This document shows, one piece after another, positions 14,301-53,293 of a stretch of 64,000 nucleotides of DNA. Origin of the DNA: Laetmonice hystrix (taxonomy: Eukaryota); contig OZ249445.1 of assembly GCA_965235115.1 (NCBI GenBank), positions 15,190,001 to 15,254,000 on the forward strand, written 5' to 3'. The stretch's first letter is position 1. The number at the start of each line of letters is the position of its first letter. The notes under the pieces are model-generated. The model saw only the letters and a program-made list of their open reading frames with translations. It ran no database searches and was not told where the DNA came from. The translations under genes were made by a program, and so were the position numbers.

Positions 14301-17300
14301 GAATATTTAATTTAACAATCATTGAAGGGCCAGGGACTAAAGTGATTTCTTCATGCAATCTCCTTTTCAACTTCGAAAAAAAAAGTTCCGTGTGCTAGCC
14401 GTAGGCAGTGAGTAATTGCTAGAACAGCAGCGTAAGAACAAAGCTTGCCTGATGAGGAAGAATGAGCAGTGGATGTTATTATTGGGGTGTACGGGTCGTT
14501 ACAGGAGGCGGTGGGCTGGGATCCTCACCGTCATGGGAGGCAGTGGACTGGGATCCTCACCATCATGGGAGGCGGCGGGCTGGGATCTGACCGTCATGGG
14601 AGGCGGTGGGCTGGGATCCTCACCGTCATGGGAGGCGGTGGGCTGGGATCCTCACCGTCATGGGAGGTGGTGGACTGGGATCCTCACCGTCATGGGAGGC
14701 GGTGGGCTGGGATCCTCACCGTCATGGGAGGCGGTGGGCTGGGATCCTCACCGTCATGGGAGGCGGTGGACTGGGATCCTCAGTCATGCGAGGCGGTGGG
14801 CTGGAATCCTCACCGTCATGGGAGGCGGTGGGCTGGGACCCTCACCGTCATGGGAGGCGGTGGACTGGGATCCTCACCGTCATGGTAGGGGGTGGGCTGG
14901 GACCCTCACCGTCATGGGAGGCGGTGGGCTGGGATCCTCACCGTCATGGGAGGCGGTGGGCTGGGATCCTCACCGTGATGGAAGGCGGTGGGCTGGGATC
15001 CTCACCGTGATGGGAGGCGGTGGACTGGGATCCTCACCGTGATGGGAGGCGGTGGGCTGGGATCATCATCCTGGTCCAGGTTAGGCCATGGCTGGACCGT
15101 TAATTGGGGACCTGAGTGGTGAGTCTGAGCTGATGTCGGGGTTGGAGCCTGACTGGCTGAATACCTCTGCCCACACACCCTCAGGCTAAGGACAGTTAAT
15201 CCACTGTCGCCTCCATAATGGATGAGTGGAGTGGTGGGGAGAAGTTTGCAGATTACCCCAGGGGTAGGGCCAAGATGGGTGCCGAGTGCACGAATGTCCA
15301 ACACTTGTTCACCCATTCTCTTTCTACTGCTTTCATCCCAAAACCTGCCCGAATCTCTGCCTGCATCGTGTTCCGAGAACCGGCGTCGTTGGAATGAAAT
15401 GGAACCAAGAATGAATAGAAAATGGAGGACCCCGAGATAATTCACAACAGTGGGTTAAAACTTGTTATGGGGTAAACCCTACAGGATGGGTACTGGAATA
15501 GATGAACCTATTCCTATGTAAAATGTCGGTAGCCGTGAGTAGTATATGAGATGTGAGTGTTAGTGCTGGTAGTTATGACGAGAACTTTGCCAGGATTGTC
15601 AGGGTGAGGCCTGGCCGTCACTGAGTACGTACGTGTAACGTTCTCGACGGTAATGGACAAACTGACCGGAATGGAGGATGGCCAGTTAATGCCAAGATGG
15701 ATGTTGTCATTGATAGACTGGATATACCTTGAATTACCCCTGCCGGCCCCGACAGGAGCTTCTATCAATAATATAGGGGGTAATTATATTCCGCCAGTCG
15801 GAGACGTTAGTCACAGTGGTTTCAGTTGTTGGGTAGAACTATATTGTGCCCTAGCCTGGAGAAGGTAATTGTGTGTGTGTGTGCTGTGTTAGAATGGAAG
15901 TATGTACTGGTGTAAGATAGAAGCAGCCCCACCCCCCCCCCCCGCCGGCCTCCGACTTTACCGCGGTTATACCGTACGTCATCAGGCCTCAGGGTCTCTC
16001 ACCATATTGACGACGTTCATGGGACGTCATACCAGAGTGTGCACTTATTGCACATGTCGTCCATACCGCCTCCTGTCTAACCTCACACCCAGAGCACCCA
16101 TCTGTCACCTCCTGTCTCAGCCATCTGTCACCTCCTGTCTCAGCCTACCATCTGTACCACTCAACTGTCCCCCACCGTCCGCGGAGACTTGCCGCCTTTC
16201 TCCGTATTGCCTGCTATATTGTTTTATCCCCCTACCTACTCCCTGTAATATTGCTTGCTGATGAGAATATGTTACAGTGGCAGCCGTCCCAAGTGATACA
16301 TCGTAATGAAAGCTGCAGCTGTAGCTTTTCAAAATATCATTAATCTCCTCGACGTGGCCAGGGAGACTTTTCTTGACATATCCGATAATCTCAGCTTGTT
16401 TGTCGTTAATCCTGTGATTATTGTGTCTCTCGCTGCAGATCATCCTCCAGTCGCGAGATTACAATGCGCTGTCGATGAGCGTGATGGCCTTCGTGGCCAT
16501 GCTCTATCCACTCGAGTATATGTTCCCCGTCATTCCACTGCTGCCTACCTGTATGTCATCTGCTGAACAGGTACCTCCTTTTTATCATCCCACTCAACAA
16601 TCTGCAAATCGCTTATAATTGAATTCCATACATCAGTATAAGAGATTAATTTCATTTTAAGGCCAAAATATACTTATCTTGGGACAGATTATATTTTGAA
16701 TGGTTGATGAATTTGTTAATTCTGTCAAAACTTTGGAACGGGCCGTATTGTGTGTATTGGTCTTGAGTTTTACAACTGGTTATGTTTTTTCACAATAATG
16801 ATTCCTTACCAGAAAGATTAGAAAAGTGCCGTACTAACTGTAGAGTAGTAAATTGGCTTGAGTTTTCCGAAGAAGTAAGTCTGAGAGTGTGGTCAATATT
16901 TGATTGCAGTTGTTGCTGGCTCCGACGCCGTTCATCATCGGAATCCCGTCCAGCTTCCTCATGTACAAACAGAACTTCAGATTGCCCGACGATGTCTGGC
17001 TTGTTGACCTGGATTCCAACAGGGTGAGTGACTGCCCACTGTTGTCGGACGGAAAACCTAGATGGAACATTGATGAACTGAATTGATTACAAAATGAAGA
17101 GTGGTTTTCTAAACAGTTTAAGCTTATTTTTATTTATTTTATTACGAAAGTAAGTACTGGTGAGTCACTTTTGGATCTGAGGTGATCTTGTAACCGTTTT
17201 GCTGAAACGTAACCAGTTTATGGATGATTTTTTTTTTTATACTATCTCAGTTACTAAGTCCGGGACGGTGGGACCAGCATCGTGCAATTAACCAGGCTCA

Positions 17301-20300: not shown

Positions 20301-23300
20301 AGATCCCAGAACAAAAGGACTTGATGAAAGAGTAGAGAATCGTCTCTGTACCACTGTATGTATTCTGCCGGTCGTTTTTTTATGGAGTCTCCCTTGTGAC
20401 GGATGAAACAGGAGAAGATCTTTAGAAAGCGCCTACTGTGGTTGCCTAACGACAGGCTATTTATATCTTCGGAAGACGGCAGGAGAAAGGCGATCCCTGG
20501 AGACAGTCGTCAATAGTCGCCGGGGGGGGGGGGGGGGGGGCATTGTGAGGCGAGGAACACGAGTCTGTCCATGTGAGGGGGTACGTCACACACCCCTCAC
20601 ACCTCACCCTAACCCACCCAGACAGAGGGGAAGGTGTTGTCATGGAAACACAGGGAGCACACCTGATAAATCAAGTACTTGGTGCCCTCTGCCCGTCTAG
20701 CATGTGTACATAGAAGTGGTATGACAGAGAGACACCCTCTGGCCTTAATGTAGAATTAGTAGATGAAGCCTTGGTTTAATGCATTGCCGTTCTGCAGCCG
20801 GTCGGGAAACATGGCGGTCTGGGGACCGAGTGATTCTGCTTTGGTACTACTCGGGTTTTTTGGGGGGCACTGTTTTTTTCCATGGTGACGTGAAGAAGAT
20901 AAACTGCCCGCTTGTCCTGTTGCGTCGTTTGTGGCGAGTAGGACGGCAGCAGGCAGTATGGGGGGGGGGGAGGTGGTTGGTCCTCCTGTCGGCTACTGTT
21001 GGCCGTCTCCAGGACGGAAACACGTTTTGTAGAGAGAGCTGCCGAGTCCTGGCCCCGGGTTTTAGTTTGCAAACTCAGTCTTAAGATTCAAATCTTAAGA
21101 CTGAACTCTTGTTTCAGAGCTTCTTTTCCAGTCTTAAGATTGGTAAAGTAACAAACTAAAAACCGGGCCCTGGGGTCAGATGTCATTATTCACGCCTGGA
21201 ATACGCTCCGATATTTCTCAGTTGGTTGGCGGGGTGGATTATTGTCTGTAGAGTTATTATAGCATTTACTGTGCGAGCAGAAAGAAAGAGGGAGAAATTG
21301 TTATTAGACGCCAGAATGTGATAAATGTCTGTCAGGGTGATATCCGATTATCTCACGGAACGAGTAGCGGTGAAAACATGGATAGCGTCAGTTGTAACGT
21401 CTTCGTTTACATCTACTAGCCCTGTCAGAGTCAACTTGAATGTTGCTTGTCGTAGATCTCACAACCGGCCAGCTGCCAAGGGACCGTACATTGCGGGGTA
21501 GACCGTTCAGATACCCCCCCCCCCCCCCTTCCAATTCTGATGGTGGACTGTGCATCCAGACTTAGCATAATGATCACTGAGTCCTAAATTTGATCCCGGC
21601 TGTGCCGGGGTGATGGAGTCGGCCGCCAAGGTTTATGTGAGCGAGGCGGCGGGCAGTGTGATGAAGTGGACCATAGACTGTCGAGTTTATGAGCGGTCGG
21701 TGGGGTACTGGACGCTCACCGCCCTCACCTCCACACTGAGGGTGGGCAAACTGACTGCCGCTACCATAACCTTATCACCAAACCCCACCACCTGCCCTCT
21801 CCCTGACACAGGTGCTAACACTGAATGCTGCCACGGCCGTATTCAAGCCGGCATCCATATTAATGTGGGTGCAAAGTTCTTGCCGGAGGAATTCCAGATG
21901 CAAATGGGTTTACGTCCTAGCAGATATCATCAGTCATTATATCAGGGGGAAAGTTGAAAATTGTTTTGCATATTACATAATATCATAAACGAACTTTGAA
22001 AAATTGGGACAATGTATGGTTCTATGATTTAGCTTAGCGCCATGTTCTCAATGATTATTGACCGATTCCCTCTTGCGGAGACACCGTTGCCATCCCAACA
22101 TCTTTTCCGTCAAAAGAAAAAAGATTAAATTCCTTTGCGGAGTTATTCATTTAATTACATCAGCCTGCCATGAGGTACGGTAAGGGCGACATGATGAAGA
22201 TGTCTGGCAGGGCCATGGAGACGTAGGCAGATGTGGTTTGGGCATATTTGACATCTTGAGAAGAATTTGGTTACATGTAAAATTGAGCATGACTTGATAT
22301 GGAAAGATTGGCCTTCAGCAAGTAAAGTGTTCTTGCACACAGGAACATGGCAGAGAGGCAAATCAATCCATGCAGTTGATGAATGAATCAAAAGCAGGAG
22401 TCACCTGTGATTGAGGGTCACCAGTATGGACGTCAGACCATTTTACACCAAGCCATCTACCTGTCTGTGTTTCTAATTCTGTCTGTATTCATTACACGTG
22501 AGATTCTAACAGCGTGTGTTAAATTTGTCTCTCAGGAATTCAAGCATCCCTGTCAAAATGAGAATCACGCCCGAACAGGAGTTGTTTGACTGCAAGTCAC
22601 GTTGTTGATCATGTGAATGAATTGTGACGTCATTGTAACGTCATGGCGGTTTCTCTTTGTCTTTGACTTAACTAGATGTCGGCTGCCACAGATGAACTCC
22701 CGCAAATGCCAGAACCCGAGGGGACAGTCTTGAAGAACCACCTCAGACAGGTTAGTAACCATGGCAACCACATTGTACATGTACTGCCTTGACAGTAGGC
22801 CAGCACTGATTACTCTCAGTGAACTGATGCTGTCAGCTGCCACGATATCTACAGCTGTTAGCCTACTGCTTGCTCTCAGTGCCAACTATGGCAATTGTTA
22901 CATGTTGTCATTTCGCGATAAAGCTATTTTCTTGGTGTTTTAATAGGAGGCATGCTTGTTGGGAACACATTTGAGTAGACTCTACTTCAAGAGAAATGTT
23001 TTTGAAGTTTTTCCATTGTTCTAAAATGTGAAGGCGAGCGAGAGATATTGCCTGGGCATATTGTTACTGAGAGATATTGCCTGGGGATATTGTTACTGAG
23101 AGATATTGCCTGGGGATATTGTTACTGAGAGATATTGCCTGGGGATATTGTTACTGAGAGATATTGCCTGGGGATATTGTTACTGAGAGATATTGCCTGG
23201 GGATATTGTTACTGAGAGATATTGCCTGGGGATATTGTTACTGAGAGATATTGCCTAGGGATATTGTTAGTGAGAGATATTGCCTGGGGATATTGTTAGT

Positions 23301-41300: not shown

Positions 41301-44300
41301 TTTTCAGTCTCATTGTGTAGAGAAAACTTTTCAAGATAAAATTGGCTTTTATCTAAACATATTTTGTAAGGAGAATAATACCAATTTATTGAAACATAGT
41401 GTCTAATTTGGTTTTGTTTGACAAGATTGCCCAGATCATGAAATCTTTGTAAGACCTGACCGTGTTGTTGCACAGATGATGGCGTACGGGCGTAAGAAAC
41501 GTTCGGGGAGCATTATGAGTGTAAAAAGTCATGTCAGCCAAGGTTATCGCTACACGGAGGGTCGTGTTGCAAACACCAACCTACCCAGCCCCGAAACCAA
41601 CAGAACATACGTCTTTGAAGCACTAATAGGTTGGTAACACCACTCAGCCACAGTTATTCTTTCCTATGTTTCTGTTGTTTCTCACTGAAAACGGAATCAA
41701 GATGAGCCAGTGTTTATTTGTAAGAGCCAGTGCTAGTGCTCTGTTTGTCGTGGTTTGCCACTGATAGTTTGGTTATTGCAGGCAAGGAGCGGTCGTGGTT
41801 GTGGGACCAGATGCAGTTCTGGGAGGATGCCTTCCTTGACGCAGTGGCCCAGGAACGAGATATCATCGGCATGGACCAGGGTCCCACTGAGATGATGGAG
41901 AGGTACATCTCTTACTATGTTCATCCTACTCAAATTACTTTCTGTGGAAAGGCAAAATAAATCAAATTCATGGGTGTTTTCAACAAATAACTGAAGTTTA
42001 CGTATTGTTGGTTCCTGGTTGCCTTGATGTTGTCATGATGTTAGCTCAGTGATGATTGGAAGGATGTTTGGAAACATGGGACTGGATCTATACTTTCACT
42101 GCCGATAGGTACAACTCGTTAGGGGATCCAGAGAAAAAGCGTTTAGAACATGACGAAGATCGACTCCTTGCGATTCTGCTCTACAACATGATCGCCTTCA
42201 TGATCATGATGCGTGTCAGTAAGAACGAGATCCGCCGCAAAGTGCGCCGTCTACTGGGCAAGTGCCACATCGGCCTCGGCTACAGCCAGGAAGTTAATAA
42301 CGTCCTGGACCAGATCAATAACCTGGCAAGTAAAAACCTAGTAACTAGTTCTTCTAATCGTGTCGTATTATCTTAAATAACTTTAATTATTGTGAATTTC
42401 AGACAAAAAGATGCTTTCATATAGTTTTATTGTGATTATTCCGGATCAAATATCATCAAGTTAAATATATGTTCATATATTTGCAATATTTGTATAGAAA
42501 TTCTCCAAAAATGCGGAAAGCATAAGTGTGTTGAGGTTGTGAAATGTCATAGGGCAAATCCATTTGCTTCTAGACCCATACAAGTTTCACTATTCAGACT
42601 TTTGTTTAATACAAATTTTAGAATACCCAAATCCTTTGTAAGCTGTGCAAGAAATATAAAGAATTGAAACCTCGGGGAATATTTGTTAGTTTGACATCAG
42701 ATGTATTGACACGTGTCAAACGTTGTTGAATGTACGAGTCCTAGGGCCATACCTAATAGGGTCGCCTTTAATTTATTTCACCTTTTTGCCAATTTTTCCT
42801 AGGGTCTGGAAGCAAAGGTGAGTTGTCAGGCTTAGGCTGGTTTCCAATCAGAAATCCTTTCTTCATTACATTGTACCAGTTCACGCCAAGGCGAATGAAA
42901 TTAGATGGTCTAGTGTGTCACAGACACGGGACATTTGTACAAATAAAATGATTTTCATATGTAAGGGAGTAGAAATGAGACATTGAAATGGGCAAAGAAC
43001 GTCGTTGAATAATCTTGCCATTGGTGACCTTTCTCTGGTGTTCGCAAATTATCAATCTTTAGGTCAGGTAAAGTATTTCCCAGTCGGTCAAATTTACTCC
43101 GATGGAACTATACTGGGGGGTTTTATTTTATCAGAAAGTTTTTTTTCAAAACATATAAACTAGAACATTTTTGTGTTTATTTATATTTTCATCCTAGCAT
43201 GTTGCGTTTTCCATATGTCTATACATGTTTTATTTAATGAATGTTTTTCCGTATAATTGGTGTGAGTGTATCATGTACTAATCTACTCTGCTCTTGTACA
43301 TATAGTTACTACTTGATACCTTGAGTGGTGGATACAGGTTGTTTGTACATGAGGTAATGGTGGGTCAATCTGTTGACAGCACGGTAACGACATTGACCTG
43401 AAGCCACTTGGTAGCCGCATGATGCAGAAACAGTCTTTCACGGTTCACTGGGGGCCTGACAACACTGGTGACATGCTCTTTATGGAGGTCAGTACTAGCG
43501 TGTAGGTCAGGGCAACAAGTAACACAAGTCTTTCAATCATTTCCATATTCGATATGTTAGAGTCATTCAAGAACGATTTTTTGGTGCCAATATTACTGTT
43601 GTGCCAGTATAAGATATCACACAGATATTGTTTTGTAATATCTTTTGGTCGGGTGTTCCTCATCATGTCGTTAGCTTGTCGTGCGTTAAAGTCCCCATTG
43701 AAAATACATTGGCGTTAACGATACGACAAGCTAACGACATGATGAGGAACACCCCCCAGTATTGTCATGCGGGAGTGGAGTCTAGCAGAAGTCATGCAAG
43801 CTTTCAGTGAAGTCCACCATTTTCCCAGCAGGCCTGACAATGGTAATGATGTATTGTGCCTGTTTCAATCAGAGATTTACGACTGAATGTTGCAGGTGTG
43901 TGATGATTGCATCATCCTGCGCAGTGTTACAGGCTCTATTTGTGATCGATGGTGGTATGAGAAACTAGTCAACATGACCTACTGCCCCAAGACCAAGGTC
44001 CTCTGCTTGTGGCGGCGACACGATGGCAAGACTCAGCTCAACAAATTCTATACAAAAAAGGCAAGTCAAGGTCGCATTGAAATAGGACAGATTGAAATAA
44101 ACATAACATCTAGAGTCGTTCTTTGAAACGTTACGTATTGTCATGTGTTTGAAGTTTGTTACTGCCGTGTGTCTGTAACAGCCCTTAGTAAGACGGGTTT
44201 TAACCAGCTCTAGTTAATAACGATTTCTGGTTATTAACTAGCTATAAGTTAACTAGATCGGGCTTAACGATGTTTAGTAAGACGGGCCCCTGAGGTATGA

Positions 44301-47300
44301 TTCTGTCTGTTGCAGTGTAAGGAACTCTACCTGTGTGTGAAGGACTCCATGGAGAAGGCGGCGGCCAGGAACAATGGCAAAGTTCCAGGTAGGACACAGT
44401 GGTGGAGGTCTTCTCCTGCTCAGGGGGGAAGCTCTCAGACGGTGCTGCCGTCTGGAGGCCAGCACGCGAACCAACCCACCCGTGCTGTTCACTCAGTAGT
44501 CAGAACTAGTTTTGAAAAGAGAGATCTGCTTGTTCGTGTTGACAGATCGAAACCAGTAGAGCTTGTAGTGCAGCGCTAAATGAGTAAAAAACATTGTTCC
44601 TAGTGTATGGAAGATGGGAGTAAGTTTGTATAAAAGGGTATTTATATTTGATAATAGTGTTAATGTTCTTCCCTGGATTGATTCATGTGTATCCTCAGTG
44701 TATGGTTAAGTATTATGAGGTGTACTAAACAAGGTAATATCTAGCTGATGATTTCTGCTGATGGTTAGCTGTTAAACTCTGTCAGACTGGTCCAGACATG
44801 ATTATTAACTATAATTTTTAGCATTGCTTTTGGCAAGACCTGACCTCTCTCCAAAGAACAAATCAGTAACTTTTTAATAGATAATATTAATAATGAAAAG
44901 AAAGAGAAATTAAAATTGACATTCACTGATGCTATGAGTCATTCATTGTAGGGGGGGGAGATGCTTTTGCTGAAGGTGCTTGGTGAAAATGTCTTGTGTC
45001 AACCTGTTTTTATTTGTCGCTATTGACTACCGTTGAATCCCTTAGTGATCACTTCCTGTTGGTAGGCATGGCAACCAGTTTGGTGCTCGGTGACTAGTAA
45101 TGAGCCAGACCAGGGGAGAAACTTTTACAGCAGTCTTTACATTTTAAATTCCCGGGTATTGTTCTTACTGGCATTAAAGGACTTGAGCGAAAGGGGCAAC
45201 ATTTACGGTAGAAGATCCCTGTCACTACATTGTTTTGGCTGTACTTTGGCGGAATCCTGAGGTGTAAGTTACTATGTCAGAGGGAGAGAAGATTGTAGGT
45301 GGGGTTCGGGGTTCGGGCTGTGTTACCCCCTGTAGGCTGTCTCATTCCTAGCCCACCAGGCGGCGTATGTTGTTGTATGATGACTAAGTGTTGGTGTTTG
45401 CCCAGGCCCTGAGTTGGGTGGGGAATTTCCTGTTCAGGATATGCGGACCGGGCAGGGCGGCCTGCTGCAGGTCTGCATGGAGGGAATCGGACTGCTCTTC
45501 GCAAACAGCAAGGTGAGTAGCTGTGACCTTGACCTAATTTGTCATGACCTGGTTATATTTTTTTTGCCGACTCGAGTTGACCTAGTTAGTCAGGGCATGA
45601 GGTGAGGGTCACCGTTAGATATGAACAGGATTGCTGCTTAGGCCAAATGTAGGTAGATAGGTAGGAAAGTGACTCTTACCTGTAGGTGTTACATACGTGT
45701 AAAGAACTTCGTTTGAAAATATTTAACTTTTACAGTAAGACATGTTGAGTGTAAATATTTCTAAAGTATTGGTACCAACAAGGCCTGCCAGTAGTGGTAC
45801 ATGTTGTATATATATATATATGTATAGACATCAAAACATTTGGAGATCATATAAAGTATTAAAGGTTCTGCTATATTCTAGCCTAGAAGCCCTGCCCTAA
45901 GATTGGCGTGACCACTCCCATGTGTTTGTGACCTGTAGAGAGTGTAGGTGTCCATGTGGTAGACTGCAGCCCGTGGCCATGTAGAATTTGGAGAAGGGTT
46001 GTAAATATGGGGCACTAAGACAGGTGGCTAATACCTTACCTGCTCCAAATTCACATTTTCATGTGCTACTAGGTCAAGTCTGAAGGACTCCAGAAATATG
46101 AAAACAAAATTCAAATATTCAAAGAAAATAAATGCACAAATACACAATAAATCGCTACTTAAAGTCTTAAAGAGTAAAGACATGCTGCTGAAGCTTAAAT
46201 GTAGAATTATATGAATTGTTGACTCAATGGTAATGACCCCGTGACAATCTGTAAATTGATAGTCGTTCGTCTACAGCATCCTATAACTGATATGCCCACA
46301 TCCAAATTGTGCATTCTTATTCTGAAATCTCTGCTGAAATCCATGGTGTCATATTTTATTCGGAAATCCATGTGCTCATATCCATAATGTCATATGTTAA
46401 TTCGGAAATCTCTATGCTTACGTCTATGACACTATGGTTTTATTCTGAAATCAATATACCTGCAACTATGATGTCATGTTATTCGGAAATCCATATGCCC
46501 ATGCCTATACTTCCACACAATATGCTAGTTGATATTCCGTAAATCCATGCCCACATCCATACCAAGTTGTATGTGAAAAGTGCGCGGAGACTCAACCTGT
46601 TGGACAGAAACACGCAAAGACATGAACAGAAACACAAAACGTGATTTAACCAACATGTAGATGTAGATGAAGCCACCCAGAGAGGAACTAGCAACATTTA
46701 GCGTGGTGCACACAGCCACACCCCCACAGTAGACACCCACAGAGCTGCACCTGTAGCGGCTGAGGTAGTTGCACTTACGACCTGTTTAGGAATGATGTAC
46801 TGGCTCGTGGCTGTCACTTCATAAACTCCTGTACTGCACACCATCTGCTCTTCTTACCTGGGTGTGTCGTCATTCTTCTCCCCCCTTCCCAGCTGCTGCA
46901 ACAGCTGCCCAGCAGTTGCTGCCAATGGGAGTGCAGACAATGGCTGGAACAGGCACTATAGCCGCAGAATTTGGAGTATATTTCTTAATTTAGAAAGAAA
47001 AGAAAAATTGCACGAAATCCAAAATATTTGGCCCTAAATTTATTATCATTGTTTTGTTTTGTTTTTGAATCCCTACAAAATAAAGAGGGGTTAGGTTAGT
47101 GAACTGCGTGCTGCCACCAAGCCAAGCCACTGTGTGCGCCCTGCGCCATTCCTACCCTTACCCATCTCTTTGTTTGCCTCTAAACTTGTACAAGTCTCTC
47201 TGAGCTCAGCTCTGCTCCAATGTGTTCCCTACACAGCTGCCCCCTCCGTAAGGACACGGTAAAAAAAACATCAAGGCTTGGACCTTGCTGTCCTACTGTC

Positions 47301-50300
47301 TCACATTCTGCCCACCTTGGTCACACCACCAATCACGCCTAGTGATCGTATAGATGCACCCAACACTGAAACCCCCACCACATGCATGCCTTGTCAGTAT
47401 CCACTGCAGCCCTGCAGATCCAAGATGGCTGCATGTGAGTGAGCACAGCCCCAAGAGGAGTGAGGTTCAGCCAGTGTGGTTGGCTGTGTCCATACATATC
47501 GTCGTTGTGTTAACTGTTGTGCTGGTGACGTGTGGAGGTGTCATCAAGTTGGATATTTTGCAGTGTCTAGCTGTGGTAGTGTAAGTAGCAGAGGTTGTAC
47601 ATTAGGGTAGACACAACACCGATGCCGACAATTGATGAACATAGTGGTACATCGAGATTCAGGCAGCACGAATAAAGGACATGGAAAGTGGCAGACCCTC
47701 TCAAAGCTCTATTCCAGCCCAACGAAGCACAACGTCCAAACCAAAACTGGATTCCGATCGCTTCCGCAATGGGTGAAATTTTTACTTGAATCTATTTTTC
47801 CATTTTTGATATTAACCTTCCCCCCTTTTCCAATCGGTAATATGTTCTCCCATTTCTGGTCCCTCCACACCTCTTTATCCAATCCTCTTGATTTTTCATA
47901 CCTCCCTATTCAGACTTTAAAACGGAAATTGAAATTTTTCAAAGCGACAAAAGCTATCAAGGATTTTACCCTAATTTTTGTGCTGTATCAGTTTGCATTC
48001 AAGCAAGCCTCTGTTCTGATTGCGACAAAAAAGAACAAACTGGAAAAAAAAATCGAGTTCAACCCCCGCCATTTGCATGGCTTGGACCTTGTCATCTGAA
48101 AATTGCATGGCATCAGTGACAAGCCAATCAGAAAAGAGGAAGGCATTTACCTGCACGAATGAGCTGACGCGGCTGGTTTTGTGTTGTGTGGGAACTTTTG
48201 AGATGGTCTCACTTTCTGCTGCTGTTGACGGGCAGGGACAGTGTCCAAGAGTCAAGTGTCCAAAAACCAAAACAACAAATGGCAAAACCTAGAAGTCTCA
48301 AATGCTAAAACTGACCTTTTCTCTTTTCTACATGCATCGCTTCTGCGGATGGGTTCAGGACTTTGAGGTACGGGTGGCTTTTATACATGGTTGGATGCAC
48401 TTGTGCATTGAGTGATGAATAGACGTATACCTACATCGGTAGTGGCCATCTCATAAGTTCAATTTGGTTGTGCTCATTATTTTGCATGCGATTGGATGTC
48501 ATGTACTGCCATGTTTGTGTTGCTCTGAAATTCGCACACTCGACCATTGCAACCACTTGTGTTGAGCCGGACCGTACGTCGCCCCTGTATCTCATACAGC
48601 GCCCTGGAGTGGCCGTTTGTGGCGACATCTCGGGGCTGTCACGTCTTGCGTACCCTCTCCGGGGTGTCGGTCAAAACCTTCATGTGTCAAGCCCAGTGGC
48701 GGGCGTCTCTACACTGAGGGCAATAGCACGGAGTCACTCCGACGGAAAGAGAATAGAAAAAGGAAAAAATAAAAACGGTGTTCAAAAAGTGTAAACCTCA
48801 CTCGACACTGGATACGACATGATGGTGGGGGCCGGCACGGTGCTTGCCACGTGTATGCACCCCAGTGTTGTTACCTCCATATGTATACATCGAGATATAT
48901 ACGTGTACATACAGTCGCTGTTGTCAATGTCGGAATCTGTGCAGCTTGATATGACCTTTGACCAGCTCCACGTGTCTTGACCATCGACCTGTAACCTTTC
49001 TCTACGTTTAGCGCGCCTTTCCGCACCGACCCTCTTTTTCTGCATTGTGCTTTCCACCCGCCCCCTAGTGTTCACCTGAAGGACCAGACAGCAAGCCTGA
49101 TAGTTCACAATAACAGCGTCATGAGATATTCAAAGGTCTGGCACCAGCCAATCAGAGATGTTCAGAGTTGGCACCAGCCAATCAGAGACGAGATTATAGT
49201 TTGTACTTACATATGACACAAGTGGTGATGCTTGCCTAGTTTTAGTGTGTCCACCTTTCTGATTGGTTGCTGACTCCTTCATTTTTGATGTTTCAGTTCT
49301 TTATTGAGCTAAGTCGTATCAAGAAATGTTTCACCATGAAAGGCGGCATATTTGTACTAGAGGAATTTGGTAAGACCACTGTAGCACTTTTTTGGTTCCT
49401 CTTTACCTCCTCGTAGTTCTGCTTTTGACTTTGGTTTCCTGTACACACATTTGATCATGGATTGAGGCCAGTGGGAATGTGATATTGTGTTCACGTAGCA
49501 TGTCGAATGACGGTGCACATGCTTCCCTGCTGTGCTTGTATATATATTATATACATGTATCGAGTGTCTTTCAATATGATGGTCTGTACATGTGTGTATG
49601 TGTACCTCATGGCCCAAGGTTGAGTTTGCGGCATGAGAACATTTACAGCCTTCGTGCGTGGGTGTGGGCGCGTGCGCGTGTGGGTGTGCGTGGGTGCCAG
49701 TGTCGCTACAGTCCTCAATGGCCAAACCTTTCCTTATTGCTCCTGACTGGATATCAGACTTTAGACAGAATAAAGCGGAATCTCATCAGGTTTTCCATGA
49801 GAGATAACACGACATGCTGCAATATCCGTCAAGTTATATCCAGACAGAGAGAGAGGAATTCATTGGTCATTGATGGAAAGAGTGACACGCGACTGTACAC
49901 GTGACGCGGGGAGACCCGGCCACCTGGTGGTGATAAACAGAACTAACCCTAAGGTTGGCGTCTTTGGTTAAGATAACCCCCTAGCAATAATAACCTTCCT
50001 AAAGGATCAAGAGACGTAGAAGAAAATTAAGCCTTAATAAATTCACTTCACTGAACCTGATCTGTGTAGATTGGTTTTTACTGCTCAGGTTAGTAATATA
50101 GAACATTAACAACAACAAAAGTCGTGTATCAGACGTTGATATGTGATATGATATTCCGTCAGACCAGGATTGACTCAACTTAGACTAAAGGATTTCTAAA
50201 TTACTCCCACGTAACATTGCTGCTAAATTCCATTTCATCTTAAACTCTAACTTTATATCACCTAATTAGAAGTGGAAAAAACGTACCATTCCTAAAACCC

Positions 50301-53293
50301 AGTGAAGTTGGAAGTTAAGTGCATGTGGCTTTGTTGAACCTTTCCAAGTTGTTGGTTTATCTCTCAATTAATGAAAGCCTACGTTGGTTTGGTTTTGGCA
50401 GATTTTGACTTAAAAGCAACCTGTTTGTGAGTTACTTGTAGCGCCAAATTCCCTGGACTGTCGTGACATCGTTTTTGCTTACACTATGATTGGCTTCTAG
50501 TTAAGTAAACGTTTTTTCAAAACGTTTAAAACGGACATCTCCAAGACATCTTATCTCATCAGTTGTAACGGCTTATAACCAGAAATGCATGGTAATTGGT
50601 AGTGGTTTCAACTCAAGCAAATGTCAAATTCCGGTAGGAGTTGAAATTATTATTTAGATCCTAGAAATATACAAATCGTCTCTCCTATAACAATTATACA
50701 CAGTATTATAGAGTCTCGAACTATACATGTATTTTAATTGTAAGAAAAGAAAGAAAGCTTCTGTGACCAATTGCCACGAACATTTGACCTTTAACCCCAA
50801 AGCATGCAATCTTTGACCTTTGTGAGAAGTTCTTGCATGATGTTGGTGTCATTTACTCAGGGTAAATTGTTTCACTACGTTCATAAAGAAAATTTACATG
50901 TTGAATTTGCAGATCCCAAAACTCGGAAAATAGTTCAGAGGAAGTACAAATCAAACATGGTAAGTCTTTACAAAACTTCATTGATTAAGATCTACGAGAG
51001 ATTTTAAGGAATCCCATTATTTTGTGGTGTGAATATTGTGACTGCTGAACAAATTGCAATTTAGGAAAGCGTGTCTAACAACGACAAGGAGACAGGGGTT
51101 GGAGGGCCGGGGGTTGGGAGATAGTGCACAGACCTGCCAGCCTTGTATGAAACAATTTGTTACGATGTACGATACTTTTTCCGTGCTTTGGAATTACGAA
51201 GTTGTCAGATCTGATGGAGAGAGCTGCTATATCTCATATCGTAATTCTCATTCACCGGTTGTTTGACCCGTTTTCCTATTTATGCCTTTAATTTTCTATT
51301 AGTGGTTGTTGTGTTGAAAAGGCGTGGTTTCATGCTAGTGTCCAAATAACTTCAATCCATGTTTTGTTTCACCTGGAAACTCGTAATATTTGGTAATCCC
51401 AAGATCCTCCCTTTTTTAGTAGGTTATCAGAACATTGTTTTCATGCAGTTTGGTTAAACGTTTTGGTATAGCATGACGAACGGTGCCACTTCGTTCTGCC
51501 TTGTATTAGGCTGTAAAACGAATCCTTAAAGGAATGGAACCGGGGTTACTGTCCTAGCCCCTTTATCTGGCAATTAGTCTTAAGACAAATCTGAAGATAT
51601 CCTATTCTTATCTCATATATATCAGTATGAAATTCAATCCTCCAAAACTGCATGCAAGAACATGTTCTTGAAAGACTATTACCCTATCATTTATTTGCAT
51701 TGTTTACCAAATTTTGTTTATCCCTGCATGCTGTAGGCCAATCAGCTAGTCCTGGCTATGCATAGAATCATTGCCATCAAGGTGCAACAAACGATGGCCT
51801 TCAAACTTGACGCCATAGCCAATCAGAGTGAAGGGAAAGGTTCTGTTGGAGAAGCCGGTCACTATGGAAACGGCACGGAAGGTTCACCATCCAACGAATC
51901 GAGTGACACGGAAACTGTGACGTCAGACTGGGACACCATCAGCCTGAGTCCACACAGCCCAGGCGAAAGTGACGTCACAGAAACCGACAGCCAACTGGAA
52001 GCCGACCCGGACAGAGTGGGTCTGGACTCGTGTCCAACAAATAACAATTTTTACAAGGACCCCGGTTACAGTGACGGAGAGCGGGCGTCGTCTGAGCCAG
52101 GCCCAATGTCCAATCAGATCGGTGACAAAAACGACGACTCTGATGAGCCGACACCAGACGGTGCACGTGCCCAGAAGGGGGCGCTGTTAAACGGCGTGTT
52201 GCAGGTCTGTGGAGAGGCGGGAGACATGAGCGGAGGTAGCTCGCTGAGGGTTGGAGACCTTCCCACTGCTGCCACCAACCACCACCACCAACCCTGATCC
52301 CGTGAGCTACATCTAAACAGCTCTTCGACCTCCTCTCAGCTCAACTCACACTCTCGCATGTGGCATCTCGCTGACTTATTAAGACCTCCTCTCCTTTTTT
52401 AACCGGTAGATTGCGTTAACCTGCATGTTGTGTTTTCAGCTTTATTGTGATATTACTACATTATTTGCATTTGTATTAACAGTGAAAAGACTTTGAGCTT
52501 GTTCCCTTTCAGAACATTTTCTACTGGCAAAGGTTTGCAGTTTGGCACTGGTTATAAATAACTTATTACTATACTGACGATGTATTGGTGTGGTATTGTA
52601 CAGCTTCTGAAAGCCATGTCTAATCTCTAACATTCAGTGGAGAAACTAACAAGACAAAACGGTTTCATTTACTTATCAACCGGGGTATGGTGCTAATTGT
52701 GGTCAGCGGTCGATATCATCTCGTCAGGCCCTACTAGTCATTTTTATAGATTAGTATCGCTATGAAATTACACAAGTTCGATGATCTGGAGATAGGCCTG
52801 TATAGGGATATCTAAGATTTAGAAGGCTGACTTAATAGTGTTTGTGCGTGAGAGCGGTTGTAAGCTTAAGATCAGCATCTTGCATTAAACTTGGTATTCG
52901 TATATTTTGCATAGATTCTGAAGAATAGGTGAATCTTTAAGAATGTAAAAAGGCATGTTTACTACTTAACGAAGGAAACTTTCTCTCTGACCAACACCAT
53001 CAGATGGGCCTACAGTATGACCTCTTTGATGTGTAATAGATACTTGGATAAGGTCACAACGAAATCCTGCAAATTCGCTCTTGAAACGTGAAATAATAAA
53101 TGGTTGCCTGCAGTAGCGGAGCTGGAGGTGTCAGTGTGACCCATGAATGTGACCTGTCTATGTTTGTGTGTTTCAGGCTGACCAGATCTGTTACGCGGTG
53201 CTCTGCGTTTTCTCCTACGTGGCAGCCGGGATGGAGGCCCGCCAAAAGTTGTTAGAGGCGGCGCAGCGTGCCAACGTCTCCAAGACGCTATAG
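2257..53293 (+). CDS. MADD: MAP kinase-activating death domain protein / Rab3 GDP-GTP exchange factor (DENN domain), 5'-partial spliced gene, 29 core coding exons in window
   Basis: Exon peptides match hallmark MADD/AEX-3 motifs in the correct order ([107 protein letters not shown]). All intron phases join; summed length is 4642 nt = 1 + 1547 codons. Confidence 0.97.
2783..2941 (+). CDS. MADD: MADD core exon w2 (cDENN)
   Basis: ttgtag|...AAG|gttagt; [53 protein letters not shown]. Confidence 0.96.
7194..7791. repeat. Minisatellite, 52-bp unit, about 11 copies, one internally deleted
   Basis: Unit ccagagatagtatattgagtatgcctcgagtggcagtcgtggggagacctga; the copy near 7553 is shortened via AG microhomology. 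Confidence 0.96.
8310..8500 (+). promoter_or_regulatory. Candidate internal promoter: YY1-type motifs plus TATA box
   Basis: ggccgccatttt near 8310, tataaaa near 8471, aatggcggc near 8487; CpG-containing patch inside an AT-rich intron. Confidence 0.35.
8571..8642 (+). CDS. Candidate alternative first coding exon ([24 protein letters not shown]), phase 0 to w3
   Basis: Two in-frame ATGs (8571, 8598), AGG|gtaaaa donor, TATAAAA about 100 nt upstream. Confidence 0.3.
10031..10078. repeat. 12-bp tandem repeat (agagaagtgttg) x4
   Basis: Visible in sequence. Confidence 0.9.
10198..10717. repeat. 104-bp tandem repeat x5, nearly identical copies
   Basis: atctctatgtcg recurs at 10201, 10305, 10409, 10513, 10617. 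Confidence 0.96.
14504..15064. repeat. G-rich minisatellite, 32-bp unit (gggatcctcaccgtcatgggaggcggtgggct), about 17 copies
   Basis: Directly visible tandem copies. Confidence 0.96.
16439..16570 (+). CDS. MADD: MADD core exon w3 (cDENN)
   Basis: ctgcag|...CAG|gtacct; [44 protein letters not shown]. Confidence 0.96.
16910..17023 (+). CDS. MADD: MADD core exon w4 (cDENN)
   Basis: ttgcag|...AGG|gtgagt; [38 protein letters not shown]. Confidence 0.96.
17251..17571 (+). CDS. MADD: Putative MADD cassette exon encoding (AQ)n and polyQ, 107 aa, phase 0-0
   Basis: T-rich tract then ctcag|; donor GGG|gtatgt; 321 nt, open in the MADD frame; mixed CAA/CAG and GCT/GCC codons. Confidence 0.7.
19537..19667. 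repeat. 42-bp tandem repeat x3
   Basis: gaatatagcgtacgatatgcctgtgttatctcggtgtattag repeated. Confidence 0.95.
21048..21173. mobile_element. Short MITE-like element with GGCCC-type termini and internal perfect hairpin
   Basis: ggccccgggttttagtttg / caaactaaaaaccgggccc termini; tcagtcttaagatt-ca-aatcttaagactga at 21075-21104. Confidence 0.55.
22676..22750 (+). CDS. MADD: MADD core exon w5
   Basis: aactag|...CAG|gttagt; [25 protein letters not shown], matching the family LPEPE...LKKHLKQ segment. Confidence 0.92.
23040..23349. repeat. Minisatellite, 29-bp unit (gagagatattgcctggggatattgttact), about 10.5 copies
   Basis: Directly visible tandem copies. Confidence 0.96.
23887..23928 (+). CDS. MADD: Putative 42-nt MADD cassette exon ([14 protein letters not shown])
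   Basis: CTAAT branch point, tttctttcag| acceptor, CAG|gtataa donor, phase 0-0, no stop. Confidence 0.45.
24938..24950 (+). promoter_or_regulatory. CTCF-like motif
   Basis: ccaccaggtggcg. Confidence 0.4.
25010..25063 (+). CDS. MADD: Putative 54-nt MADD cassette exon ([18 protein letters not shown])
   Basis: cttgtag| acceptor, TCA|gtaagt donor, phase 0-0, no stop. Confidence 0.45.
26637..26807 (+). CDS. MADD: MADD core exon w6 (dDENN start)
   Basis: ttctag|...ATG|gtaagc; [16 protein letters not shown]...[21 protein letters not shown]. Confidence 0.96.
26830..27032. mobile_element. MITE-like element, about 203 bp, about 52-bp terminal inverted repeats
   Basis: Left aagtgctgaacccaccaaggtgattccccttgcgacgcccatgcgattttga; right end is its reverse complement with few mismatches; no ORF. 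Confidence 0.8.
27211..27369 (+). CDS. MADD: MADD core exon w7 (dDENN)
   Basis: tatcag|...CAG|gtaagt; [31 protein letters not shown]...KLARTQ. Confidence 0.96.
28530..28752 (+). CDS. MADD: MADD core exon w8
   Basis: ttacag|...ACA G|gtgggc; [14 protein letters not shown]...[12 protein letters not shown]. Confidence 0.95.
28905..29005. other. 101-bp intronic fold-back (hairpin) element
   Basis: About 45-bp arms, attctacc...tcgcgagacg..agagcatgtgagatac / gtatctaacatgctctc..cgtctcgcga...ggtagaat, 10-nt loop. Confidence 0.8.
29075..29185 (+). CDS. MADD: MADD core exon w9 (Ser/acidic)
   Basis: tttcag|...CCA G|gtacag; [37 protein letters not shown]. Confidence 0.94.
29985..30202 (+). CDS. MADD: MADD exon w10 (acidic low complexity)
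   Basis: tttcag|...AAG|gtaagc; phase 1-0, open frame EVYCEDHM...PPRPPPGK. Confidence 0.85.
30448..30662 (+). CDS. MADD: MADD exon w11 (FRYD-repeat segment)
   Basis: aatcag|...AG|gtgggt; phase 0-2, open frame AEGDHFRYD...PEVTK. Confidence 0.8.
30850..31180 (+). CDS. MADD: MADD exon w12 (proline-rich)
   Basis: tttcag|...AAG|gttagt; phase 2-0 joins w11; [16 protein letters not shown]...GVGISK. Confidence 0.82.
31198..31384. repeat. Minisatellite, 23-bp unit (tcctttacctggtatggacaatc) x8
   Basis: Starts 18 nt after the w12 donor. Confidence 0.96.
31514..31619 (+). CDS. MADD: MADD exon w13
   Basis: tttcag|...TTC G|gtaggt; [35 protein letters not shown]. Confidence 0.8.
32259..32297 (+). CDS. 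MADD: Putative 39-nt MADD cassette microexon ([13 protein letters not shown])
   Basis: ttacttacag| acceptor, CGG|gtaaga donor, phase 1-1 matching the host intron. Confidence 0.5.
32422..32435. promoter_or_regulatory. RFX X-box motif (one of about 8 in MADD introns)
   Basis: gttaccatagcaac; others at 2117, 4339, 20636, 22755, 27854, 34100, 37597. Confidence 0.5.
35702..35770 (+). CDS. MADD: MADD exon w14
   Basis: tttcag|...CTT G|gtatgt; [23 protein letters not shown], preceding the conserved GNRKALV. Confidence 0.8.
36366..36474 (+). CDS. MADD: MADD core exon w15
   Basis: ctgcag|...AG|gtagag; [15 protein letters not shown], matching family GNRRALVDQKSSVIKH. Confidence 0.93.
36667..36853 (+). 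CDS. MADD: MADD core exon w16
   Basis: ttgcag|...GTG|gtaggc; [22 protein letters not shown]. Confidence 0.95.
37062..37256 (+). CDS. MADD: MADD core exon w17
   Basis: ttacag|...ATG|gtcagt; VFKGIV...[28 protein letters not shown]. Confidence 0.95.
37481..37586 (+). CDS. MADD: MADD exon w18
   Basis: tgacag|...GTA G|gtgcgt; [13 protein letters not shown]...AETRSLHEE, echoing family DTRSLKEE; a second GT 4 nt upstream would break frame. Confidence 0.82.
38814..38924 (+). CDS. MADD: Putative 111-nt MADD cassette exon with NAGNAG acceptor and GC donor
   Basis: cag|tag| tandem acceptor; CAG|gcaagt donor; phase 1-1; [37 protein letters not shown]. Confidence 0.6.
39564..40201 (+). CDS. MADD: MADD exon w19 (large low-complexity exon)
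   Basis: ctccag|...GGG|gtaagg; inside ORF 39545-40276; ends [14 protein letters not shown], echoing family RGTLSDSEIE. Confidence 0.88.
41476..41629 (+). CDS. MADD: MADD exon w20
   Basis: gcacag|...ATA G|gttggt; ends [10 protein letters not shown], matching family QRVYLYEGLL. Confidence 0.9.
41782..41902 (+). CDS. MADD: MADD core exon w21
   Basis: ttgcag|...AG|gtacat; [34 protein letters not shown]. Confidence 0.96.
42109..42325 (+). CDS. MADD: MADD core exon w22 (so-called death-domain region), GC donor
   Basis: cgatag|...CTG|gcaagt; [22 protein letters not shown]...[12 protein letters not shown]...DQINNL. Confidence 0.94.
43380..43487 (+). CDS. MADD: MADD core exon w23
   Basis: tgacag|...GAG|gtcagt; [36 protein letters not shown]. 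Confidence 0.94.
43651..43754. mobile_element. Palindromic MITE-like element, copy 1
   Basis: About 40-bp arms gggtgttcctcatcatgtcgttagcttgtcgt / acgacaagctaacgacatgatgaggaacaccc; related copy at 59787-59902. Confidence 0.8.
43896..44060 (+). CDS. MADD: MADD core exon w24, GC donor
   Basis: ttgcag|...AAG|gcaagt; [10 protein letters not shown]...[24 protein letters not shown]...NKFYTKK. Confidence 0.95.
44316..44388 (+). CDS. MADD: MADD core exon w25
   Basis: ttgcag|...CCA G|gtagga; [18 protein letters not shown]. Confidence 0.95.
45406..45512 (+). CDS. MADD: MADD core exon w26
   Basis: gcccag|...AAG|gtgagt; [36 protein letters not shown]. Confidence 0.95.
47237..47257 (+). CDS. MADD: Putative 21-nt MADD microexon (LPLRKDT)
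   Basis: ttccctacacag| acceptor, ACG|gtaaaa donor, phase 0-0, upstream TGC and pyrimidine tract. Confidence 0.5.
48359..48367 (+). CDS. MADD: Putative 9-nt MADD microexon (DFE)
   Basis: CTGAC branch point, ctttttctcttttct tract, TGC motifs, ttcag|GACTTTGAG|gtacgg; phase 0-0. Confidence 0.65.
49297..49369 (+). CDS. MADD: MADD core exon w27
   Basis: tttcag|...TTT G|gtaaga; [24 protein letters not shown]. Confidence 0.94.
50913..50959 (+). CDS. MADD: MADD core exon w28
   Basis: ttgcag|...ATG|gtaagt; [16 protein letters not shown], matching family VVSHKYKTPM. Confidence 0.92.
51737..52297 (+). CDS. MADD: Putative alternative last coding exon of MADD (186 aa plus stop)
   Basis: ctgtag| phase-0 acceptor 21 nt upstream of ORF 51758-52297; begins [12 protein letters not shown], paralleling [12 protein letters not shown]. 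Confidence 0.7.
   Translation, partial: ANQLVLAMHRIIAIKVQQTMAFKLDAIANQSEGKGSVGEAGHYGNGTEGSPSNESSDTETVTSDWDTISLSPHSPGESDVTETDSQLEADPDRVGLDSCPTNNNFYKDPGYSDGERASSEPGPMSNQIGDKNDDSDEPTPDGARAQKGALLNGVLQVCGEAGDMSGGSSLRVGDLPTAATNHHHQP
53177..53293 (+). CDS. MADD: MADD canonical last coding exon w29 (ends TAG)
   Basis: tttcag|; [18 protein letters not shown]...KTL*, matching family AHEICYSVLCLFSYVAA. Confidence 0.94.
   Translation, partial: ADQICYAVLCVFSYVAAGMEARQKLLEAAQRANVSKTL

Follow-up and report, generated by a model that had tools for sequence, protein, structure and literature searches.

How many optional, frame-preserving exons does the MADD-like gene in the 64,000-nt stretch of Laetmonice hystrix DNA analysed here (the window) really carry? 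The initial annotation had placed about ten of them between 17251 and 52297, namely cassettes of 321, 42, 54, 39, 30, 24, 111, 21 and 9 nt and an alternative last exon, and had read them as a gene-wide combinatorial isoform system of one Rab3/Rab27 GEF. Three of these candidates were supported by orthologues and one was plausible, while one was refuted and five were left unsupported. The best explanation, which we hold with a probability of about 0.78, is a single spiralian MADD/Rab3GEP gene with 29 constitutive exons and three optional modules of remote ancestry, the remaining candidates being chance segments or a miscount. The first module would be an exon of 111 nt in intron 18, within the disordered linker, the second an ancient 9-nt microexon that would add DFE to the beta3-beta4 loop of the PH-like domain, and the third a pair of paralogous, mutually exclusive last exons, each supplying its own C-terminal helix and tail; intron 13 may hold a fourth module, an acidic 39-nt microexon.

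Gene identity and exon model

The gene lies on the + strand, as do all features given below, and is a MADD/Rab3GEP orthologue colinear with RefSeq MADD (tblastn and junction solving). In conserved parts its identity to scallop, nemertean and brachiopod (Lingula) MADD is 72-75%; searches with orthologues gave no closer relative above ~75% identity and none from the window's own species. The Pfam DENN domain (PF02141) matched the exons at 16418-16615 (E = 1.5e-7) and 16904-17083 (E = 4.7e-6), the MADD-type death domain (Death_MADD, PF23629) matched 42056-42376 (E = 4.9e-34), and E26-E29, which form the C-terminal PH-like domain, align at about 90% with the residues of Lineus and Tubulanus placed in PH_MADD (PF25328) by Pfam. 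Colinearity with MADD orthologues holds along the in-window part of the protein, the uDENN excepted: the gene start and the N-terminal uDENN lie upstream of the window, and alignment of the first exon in the window begins at residue ~186-210 of the orthologues. The proposed identity as a Rab3/Rab27 GEF was thus borne out by the Pfam domains, the colinearity and the open spliced frame, and GEF activity on Rab3 and Rab27 would be expected from orthology.

The rebuilt model comprises 29 exons and 1499 codons and is free of stops from E2 to the stop at 53293. The core DENN, ending at DLDSNR, is encoded by E2-E4 (2783-2941, 16439-16570 and 16910-17023, all phase 0), followed by E5 (22676-22750; 75 nt, phase 0-0). 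The joined translation is open through E6-E9 (26637-26807, 27211-27369, 28530-28752 and 29075-29185) and E10-E13 (29985-30202, 30448-30662, 30850-31180 and 31514-31619), and the model continues with E14-E18 (35702-35770, 36366-36474, 36667-36853, 37062-37256 and 37481-37586). The death domain and the start of the PH-like domain are contributed by E19-E22 (39564-40201, 41476-41629, 41782-41902 and 42109-42325) and E23-E26 (43380-43487, 43896-44060, 44316-44388 and 45406-45512), and strands beta4-beta7 of the PH-like domain by E27 (49297-49369) and E28 (50913-50959). The canonical last exon, E29 (53177-53293), falls outside the span initially annotated. Introns are of phase 0 in the DENN part (I1-I7) and in most of the C-terminal part and of phase 1 at I8, I9, I13, I14 and I18, in agreement with the host phases proposed earlier (0 in the DENN and C-terminal introns, 1 in the linker). 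I22 and I24 have GC donors.

Three modules shared with other animals

That human and spiralian MADD genes produce multiple isoforms is already known. Six cell-specific splice isoforms, two of them neuron-specific, have been described for human IG20/MADD/DENN-SV/KIAA0358 (PMC3994957), and the human family likewise consists of one DENN-domain Rab3 GEF gene with optional internal exons and an alternative C-terminal end. Between human and window, an exon-level match was drawn for the 9-nt microexon alone, and the apoptosis-related functions are those of the human isoforms. The 'madd-4' of a C. elegans preprint is a different gene from MADD.

Among spiralians, the RefSeq isoforms of 12 species contain optional frame-preserving modules at I4, I5, I13, I18, I26 and I28; the isoform sets included Lineus X1-X9, Liolophura X1-X6, Magallana X1-X9, Mizuhopecten X1-X12, Octopus X1-X10, Mytilus and Mercenaria. 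Listed by preceding exon, optional modules occur after E4, E5, E13, E18, E19, E25, E26 and E28 in the spiralian RefSeq sets, and these sets and the window have in common an exon with a GW motif, the DFE microexon and a last exon of the ANQ..HR.. type. The idea of optional modules spread along the gene therefore stands in so far as orthologues have several of them, frame-preserving and at the introns that had been flagged, whereas their number and the basis on which they were proposed were wrong. The three modules treated below are orthologous by position, phase and sequence to those of other animals, and two of them fall within the predicted PH fold of an orthologue. In this animal they are probably optional and regulated by tissue, judging from the isoform annotations of relatives and from papers on vertebrates and bilaterians.

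The 9-nt microexon (GACTTTGAG, encoding DFE) lies at 48359-48367 in intron 26, in phase 0 and flanked by AG and GT. Its donor scored 8.4 bits, within the top 0.8%, on a small PWM trained on 28 introns of the same gene, which was used for all splice-site scores given here. An identical DFE insert between ANSK and FF was found in seven proteins from four phyla, DFE being carried by proteins of Tubulanus (nemertean), Octopus, Mizuhopecten (scallop), two spiders and a locust. In Octopus (6 isoforms with and 2 without) and in Mizuhopecten the insert is optional, and in the Tubulanus genome the microexon was located at L001:43525-43533. Given 17 AG-N9-GT sites in I26, the chance expectation of DFE is ~5e-4. 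The proposed 9-nt cassette was in this way upheld by orthologues, with the same DFE at the same junction in other protostomes. In vertebrates, zebrafish madd contains a 9-nt neural, srrm3/4-dependent microexon, for which RT-PCR primers were placed in both flanking exons (PMC12626424 supplement), and only two neural exons have been described as bilaterian-ancestral, the MADD microexon being one of them (bioRxiv 10.64898/2026.09.05.749416). The zebrafish exon (VastDB DreEX0044304) and its human orthologue are likewise 9 nt long, in phase 0 and at the same junction, between exons encoding ...GGLLQV...ANSK/HxQ and FxxL..IKKC. From these correspondences in sequence we identify 48359-48367 as orthologous to the neural 9-nt microexon that is ancestral to bilaterian MADD; neural inclusion and dependence on Srrm/eMIC are features of the zebrafish and human microexon. 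The window would add one further spiralian lineage in which this ancestral microexon is intact and codes for exactly DFE.

In an AlphaFold model of the Tubulanus C-terminus (core pLDDT >90), DFE is placed in a loop between strands 31-36 and 44-47 and the last exon forms the helix 84-100. The Pfam PH_MADD span covers both the microexon and the last-exon region. A UGC motif is present at positions -15 to -13 upstream of the window's microexon; in the Tubulanus orthologue no UGC was found at the same distance, and because of this difference no eMIC-type architecture is claimed.

The alternative last exon (51737-52297) joins E28 in phase 0 and contains 186 codons and a stop at 52295-52297. It opens with an ANQ..HRII helix (pattern A-x-x-hydrophobic...HR[IV][IF]), and its strong acceptor scores 10.3 bits, in the top 0.2%. 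A profile built from 35 protostome alternative C-termini gave further support, matching the alternative last exon with E = 8.5e-6 and E29 with E = 3.2e-6; because one profile matches both, the two exons are paralogous. Alternative last exons of this kind are annotated in Magallana, Mizuhopecten, Octopus, Lineus and Liolophura, and the alternative C-terminus also occurs in insect and chelicerate proteins. At 186 codons the exon in the window is much longer than those of spiralian MADD genes, which have about 25-50 codons. AATAAA/ATTAAA hexamers at 52884 and 53095, ahead of E29, are putative polyadenylation signals.

The 111-nt exon (38814-38924) lies in intron 18 in phase 1-1 and is open in phase 1 only. 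As had been proposed, it is in phase and open, although its donor (G|GCAAGT) is GC and not GT; this donor resembles the two other GC donors of the gene. Optional counterparts of the exon occur in eight spiralian genera (Lineus, Liolophura, Ruditapes, Mercenaria, Mizuhopecten, Mytilus, Magallana and Octopus). Like the optional exons of spiralians, it has a GW motif and ends in S/T-[DE]-S just ahead of GSPV. An HMM profile search ranked the exon third of 2823 six-frame segments (E = 0.5). Raw and local alignment scores were near background because the sequence is S-rich, and a strict regular-expression motif, which was too strict, gave 0 matches. Position, phase, splice sites and motifs together support orthology of this exon to the optional GW...S/T-rich exon.

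Could the three modules be present without being optional? If the gene made one mRNA form only, the modules would be either constitutive, the 111-nt exon being always included, or decayed relics. The few isoforms annotated in Tubulanus and Owenia would agree with this, but in the window all three modules have intact splice sites and open frames, the microexon codes for the conserved DFE without change, the two last exons are both undamaged and have predicted polyadenylation signals between them, and the modules are optional in every deeply annotated relative. We therefore regard a single form as very unlikely. For annotation, the value of these results is that the MADD model of this genome should include the 9-nt microexon, the 111-nt exon with its GC donor and the two alternative last exons, all of which automatic pipelines that work without RNA data will miss.

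Candidates in the long introns

A reading that survives better than a single mRNA form, while still being improbable, is that lineage-specific cassettes (the 39-nt and 24-nt segments of intron 13 and/or the 321-nt segment of intron 4) are real in addition to the three conserved modules. The 39-nt acidic candidate (32259-32297, phase 1) has its acceptor in the top 1.3% and its donor in the top 2.1%, and the 24-nt candidate (probably 33415-33438; GIAASGSV) in the top 0.3% and 2.3%, respectively, so that both splice sites of both segments are within the top 0.3-2.3%. Intron 13 is moreover the most recurrent spot of alternative splicing in bivalves, with acidic inserts, and optional acidic microexons occur at the junction of the 39-nt candidate in scallops, mussels and oysters. 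Against this, none of the candidates showed conservation above background: the similarity score of the 39-nt candidate to relatives' inserts was within background, and no phase of the 24-nt segment contains a stop. Taken together, the 39-nt segment is a plausible optional exon, and the 24-nt segment has good splice sites only. The vertebrate GIMSFASSLY, considered as an insert after E13 that might correspond to the 24-nt segment, was an alignment artefact of E13 itself.

In intron 4, Lineus has an optional 12-aa exon, and the 321-nt (AQ)n/polyQ candidate (17251-17571, phase 0) is the sole open in-phase pair among the 109 AG..GT pairs of exactly this size; among intronic AGs its acceptor ranks in the top 0.5%, and its donor is in the top 4%. 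The openness of the segment is attributable to its microsatellite and Q-rich composition, and intron 26 contains two further in-phase ORFs longer than 300 nt. The (GCYCAG)n core occurs in at least 70 genomic copies, some of them in non-ORF contexts. Variation among the GCYCAR units is confined to third positions; coding selection in the (AQ)n repeat was considered as the cause and rejected, given that the same C/T pattern recurs in other copies across the genome, some of which have flanks full of stops. None of 266 MADD proteins had an insert at this junction, where the spacing is 8-13 aa (21 aa in Lineus), and the spiralian RefSeq MADD sets, in contrast to the window's candidate, contain no Q-rich insert past the DENN core. 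The 321-nt cassette is thus unsupported, having no counterpart in these 266 proteins and sitting on a common genomic microsatellite. That it is nevertheless a genuine lineage-specific optional exon born from the (GCYCAG)n microsatellite is unlikely. If it were one, about 107 residues of (AQ)n/polyQ would be added after the core DENN, and some isoforms would have a condensate-prone or interaction-prone linker unseen in any known MADD.

For the other short cassettes only sizes had been given, and the coordinates used here for the 42, 54, 30 and 24 nt segments are best matches, that is, guesses at what was intended. The 42-nt candidate in intron 5 (probably 23887-23928, phase 0) has a strong acceptor (12.3 bits) and a weak donor (2.9 bits), is open in two phases and showed no similarity to relatives' inserts after E5. 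In the same intron, the 54-nt candidate (probably 24092-24145, phase 0) has a weak acceptor (top 13%), and no homology to it was found among relatives' inserts. The 30-nt candidate in intron 13 (probably 33339-33368) has a weak donor and is open in all three phases, with no homology to MADD inserts found. Nothing beyond splice sites spoke for the 42, 54, 30 and 24 nt cassettes. Altogether, no homologues of the 321, 42, 54, 30 and 24 nt segments were found among ~430 MADD proteins or isoforms, a comparison with proteins at most ~75% identical, which lineage-specific exons could escape. Most likely, these segments are AG..GT pairs that arose by chance in long introns. Conversely, several optional exons of relatives had no counterpart in the window above background, namely the Lineus NNCVDDENMVEA exon (after E4), the Lineus GHRGSLGESM exon (after E19), the bivalve 8-aa exons (after E25) and the short terminal exons ending in 'PKLGK-stop' (after E26).

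Chance level of symmetric segments

Introns I4-I28 contain 12,936 symmetric AG..GT pairs of 9-330 nt, of which 2,235 are open in the host phase. The counts of open pairs in host and wrong phase for five length bins were 770/793, 640/574, 640/625.5, 174/195.5 and 40/34.5. When splice-site score filters were applied, the symmetric fraction was 0.30-0.35 and the in-phase/wrong-phase counts were 54/43 and 7/6.5. The enrichment of symmetric exons over a null, named in the initial annotation as the check on its proposal, was therefore not observed, host-phase counts being equal to wrong-phase counts. For each of the short candidate sizes there are 52-106 in-phase open pairs. Being a multiple of three, stop-free and in phase has almost no discriminating power for short segments, and the candidate set as a whole is not above chance.

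Hardly credible in this light is the reading that all of the roughly ten candidates, including the 321-nt Q-rich segment, are used and combined in a gene-wide isoform code: relatives do carry optional exons in the long introns that host them, the acceptors of the 24-nt and 321-nt segments rank within the top 0.5%, and all but one are multiples of three and open in phase (the 321, 42, 54, 39, 30, 24 and 9 nt segments with AG..GT flanks, the 111-nt segment with its GC donor), but none of the length bins or score thresholds shows an excess above the wrong-phase controls, every short size has dozens of equivalents, five of the segments have no known homologue, and the 21-nt cassette is a 22-nt segment with a stop. 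For exon hunting from sequence alone, the implication is that thousands of intronic AG..GT pairs in a single gene can be symmetric, stop-free and in phase, and that real microexons can be separated from this noise only by orthology or RNA.

The supposed 21-nt cassette (LPLRKDT) in intron 26 (47237-47258) was a miscount. The flanking AG (47235-36) and GT (47259-60) enclose 22 nt, and phase 0 reads TAA at 47249-47251. The length is 22 and not 21 because there are five C's at 47240-47244, and an independent DNA contig (three DNA-like Logan runs from one sample) confirmed the run of five C's with no indel.

MADD gene model and intron phases

Judged by homology, the + strand of the window carries a MADD/Rab3GEP gene: the translated exons matched DENN and the MADD death domain (Pfam), the death-domain exon used as query retrieved full-length MADD proteins, and in two more protein searches the matches were named RefSeq MADD or Rab3 GDP-GTP exchange factor in many animals. 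The nearest MADD proteins were spiralian (scallops, the nemerteans Lineus and Tubulanus, a chiton and Lingula), with 72-75% identity over the alignable parts, and no protein of the same species or genus was found in these protein searches. All junctions were solved against Lineus isoform X3 with splice sites read directly from the sequence, giving 29 exons within the window, from E1 (ending at 2398) to E29 (53177-53293), and a spliced frame of 1499 codons that is open from E2 on; the uDENN portion lies upstream of the window. The intron phases of the initial annotation held (I1-I7 phase 0; I8, I9, I13, I14 and I18 phase 1; I26 and I28 phase 0). Its observation of about ten frame-preserving optional exons was partly confirmed; its interpretation was correct in kind, overstated in extent and not new.

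Exon E11 (30448-30662) encodes three FRYD repeats, each with a donor-like AG/GTA(T/C)GA (after 30503, 30557 and 30608). Together with the donor in use after 30662 these sites are all in phase 2 and spaced by 54, 51 and 54 nt, so alternative 5' splice sites could remove repeat units in frame; scallop isoforms differ in this repeat region (model aa 464-489). Minisatellite arrays at 415-871, 7151-7890 and 14416-15042, two of them within the 13.5-kb intron 2, give periodic peptide repeats in every frame.

Probable optional exons of the C-terminal PH-like domain

A 9-nt microexon in I26, GACTTTGAG (48359-48367, + strand), encoding DFE, appears real from orthologous inserts. A 3-residue insert was present exactly at the E26-E27 junction in 15 of about 130 full-length homologues aligned to the model, and in seven of these, among them Tubulanus, Octopus, two spiders and a locust, an identical DFE follows ANSK. 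DFE is present in six isoforms of Octopus sinensis, absent from two others and present in one isoform of Mizuhopecten, and the genomic counterpart in the Tubulanus polymorphus MADD locus (L001:43525-43533) has AG and GT at its edges. With 17 AG-N9-GT sites in I26, an in-phase DFE would arise by chance at one of them with a probability of about 5e-4. In zebrafish madd the 9-nt microexon DreEX0044304 is neural and srrm3/4-dependent (eLife 2025; PMC12626424 supplement), and the primers used for its RT-PCR code for GGLLQVT and LNHIKKC (PMC12626424 supplement), which correspond to the two exons bordering the 9-nt microexon here. In a 2026 preprint the MADD 9-nt microexon is among just two exons that are confidently bilaterian-ancestral and neural-specific (10.64898/2026.09.05.749416). 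If the intron downstream of the microexon is retained, the frame runs briefly before a stop (48359-48420); annotated Lineus and Liolophura isoforms likewise terminate in '(D)FEV...', suggesting that the retained-intron form may be a conserved truncating variant.

The alternative last exon (51737-52297, + strand) is likewise best read as real, on a profile match and isoform annotation in relatives. Its start resembles the C-termini of numerous protostome MADD isoforms (molluscs, nemerteans, insects and chelicerates), and in a search of 2823 six-frame segments a profile built from 35 protostome alternative ends matched both this exon (E = 8.5e-6) and the canonical E29 (E = 3.2e-6), which indicates that the two exons are paralogues. 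Isoforms with the alternative end are annotated in Magallana (6/9 isoforms), Mizuhopecten, Octopus, Lineus and Liolophura, and polyadenylation hexamers are located at 52884 and 53095, upstream of E29. The 186-codon acidic, Ser-rich tail of the exon is far longer than its counterparts in relatives. The annotated Tubulanus polymorphus MADD (L001 51175-54679) terminates in the alternative (ANQ...) last exon, and the canonical QICYAV/CVFSY exon was not found within 2 kb downstream, so this end is either lost or farther away.

E26-E29 encode the residues to which Pfam assigns PH_MADD. For the Tubulanus MADD C-terminus, an AlphaFold model (input alignment of 54 sequences; mean pLDDT 81, core >90) predicts a classic PH fold with seven strands and a C-terminal helix. 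In this model DFE (residues 41-43) is located in the loop between strands 31-36 and 44-47, and the last exon starts precisely at helix 84-100. The beta3-beta4 loop of PH domains is situated on a ligand-binding face. The microexon would make this loop longer and more acidic, and the choice of last exon would exchange the capping helix and tail.

Candidate optional exons of the linker

The proposed 111-nt cassette is almost certainly the segment at 38814-38924 (+ strand) in I18, with phase 1-1 and a GC rather than a GT donor, by which it would be overlooked in a GT-only search. Its donor, G/GCAAGT, is the same as in introns I22 and I24, and the three sites (38924/38925, 42325/42326 and 44060/44061) represent a high GC-AG share for a single gene. 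Phase 1 is the only open phase, and the encoded peptide, with a GW motif and the end ...ATSTDS, parallels an optional exon in Lineus, Liolophura, Ruditapes, Mercenaria, Mizuhopecten, Mytilus, Magallana and Octopus that ends ...STSTES or ...SNSTGS before GSPV. The match by sequence was weak (HMM E = 0.5, rank 3/2823; raw scores close to background), and on the combined positional evidence the exon is probably genuine.

For the 42-, 54-, 39-, 30- and 24-nt candidates sizes alone had been proposed, and the coordinates used are those of the best-scoring segments, in gene order, among in-phase, stop-free AG..GT segments of these sizes. The 39-nt segment thus located in I13 (32259-32297, + strand) has both acceptor and donor in the top 1-2%, and its insertion point (after ...SELF) is a junction that has optional acidic microexons in scallops, mussels and oysters. 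The similarity of its peptide to the inserts of relatives was not above background, and this exon is plausible, with the chances for and against about balanced. Lying in a disordered Ser-rich linker, the 111- and 39-nt exons would supply phosphorylation or interaction sites.

The multi-isoform concept of MADD is established from human IG20/MADD, whose six isoforms are expressed cell-specifically and include two neuronal ones (PMC3994957), from additional exons under neural regulation (57 and 63 nt) in zebrafish madd (PMC12626424 supplement) and from RefSeq predictions of up to 30 or more isoforms in a species. The 9-nt and alternative last exons, and probably the 111-nt exon, are orthologues of modules already known.

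Chance expectation and the remaining candidates

Among the 12,936 symmetric AG..GT pairs of 9-330 nt in I4-I28, 2,235 were open in the host phase, with 52-106 such pairs for each short candidate size. Openness in the host phase was compared by length bin with the mean of the two wrong phases as an internal control, giving 770 and 793 (9-30 nt), 640 and 574 (33-60 nt), 640 and 625.5 (63-150 nt), 174 and 195.5 (153-300 nt) and 40 and 34.5 (303-600 nt), respectively. Filtering by splice-site score, with a PWM derived from the 28 introns of this gene, left the symmetric fraction at 0.30-0.35 and gave in-phase versus wrong-phase counts of 54/43, 7/6.5 and 4/1.5. Symmetric in-phase candidates were therefore no commoner than the control, an outcome that the initial annotation had itself named as refuting, and as a set they are not above chance. 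I26 also holds in-phase ORFs at 47611-48090 (about 160 codons) and 48423-48788 (about 120 codons), neither with MADD homology, which illustrate how readily long in-phase open segments occur here.

The acceptor of the 321-nt candidate (17251-17571, + strand) is strong and its donor fair, and no other pair of exactly this size is open in phase. The candidate is unsupported as a cassette: its core consists of (GCYCAG)n hexamer units, a repeat that occurs in 70 or more genomic copies, those in non-coding contexts showing the same C/T variation, and the remainder is CAA/CAG-rich. No similar insert was present in 266 MADD proteins: the DLDSNK to LPxLPEPE spacing is 8-13 residues, or 21 in Lineus alone, which has a 12-aa optional exon at this point. 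The Pfam DENN model ends at this site; an insert here would follow the core DENN domain and not interrupt it. A genuine Q-rich cassette after this core is the only reading with novelty, and it is improbable. The 70 or more copies of the (GCYCAG)n family are distributed over the 627-Mb genome (G000; e.g. C20:11158034-11158678, C5:33231025-33232102 and C3:38804634-38804935). Some are arrays of several hundred bases, and some (L005 and L006) lie in open (AQ)n reading frames.

The 42-nt (23887-23928), 54-nt (24092-24145), 30-nt (33339-33368) and 24-nt (33415-33438) candidates, all on the + strand, are unsupported, no homologous inserts having been found in MADD relatives. All three phases are open in the 30- and 24-nt segments, as are two phases in the 42- and 54-nt segments, and one splice site is weak in each of the 42-, 54- and 30-nt segments.

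The proposed 21-nt cassette (47237-47257, LPLRKDT) was a misreading: the five C's at 47240-47244 make the real AG..GT segment 22 nt long (47237-47258), with TAA in phase 0 (CTG CCC CCT CCG TAA), and LPLRKDT would need one C fewer. A search for sequencing runs gave three, all from one sample and none of RNA; they contain 85-94% of all sampled words, and the presence of intron words alongside exon words indicates genomic DNA. A single DNA contig from these spans 46500-47371 and has no difference from the window at 47237-47260. Eight single-base differences and one indel (at 47155) separate this second contig, from the same sample, from the window over the roughly 870 nt of intron 26 covered, corresponding to roughly 1% heterozygosity or haplotype divergence.
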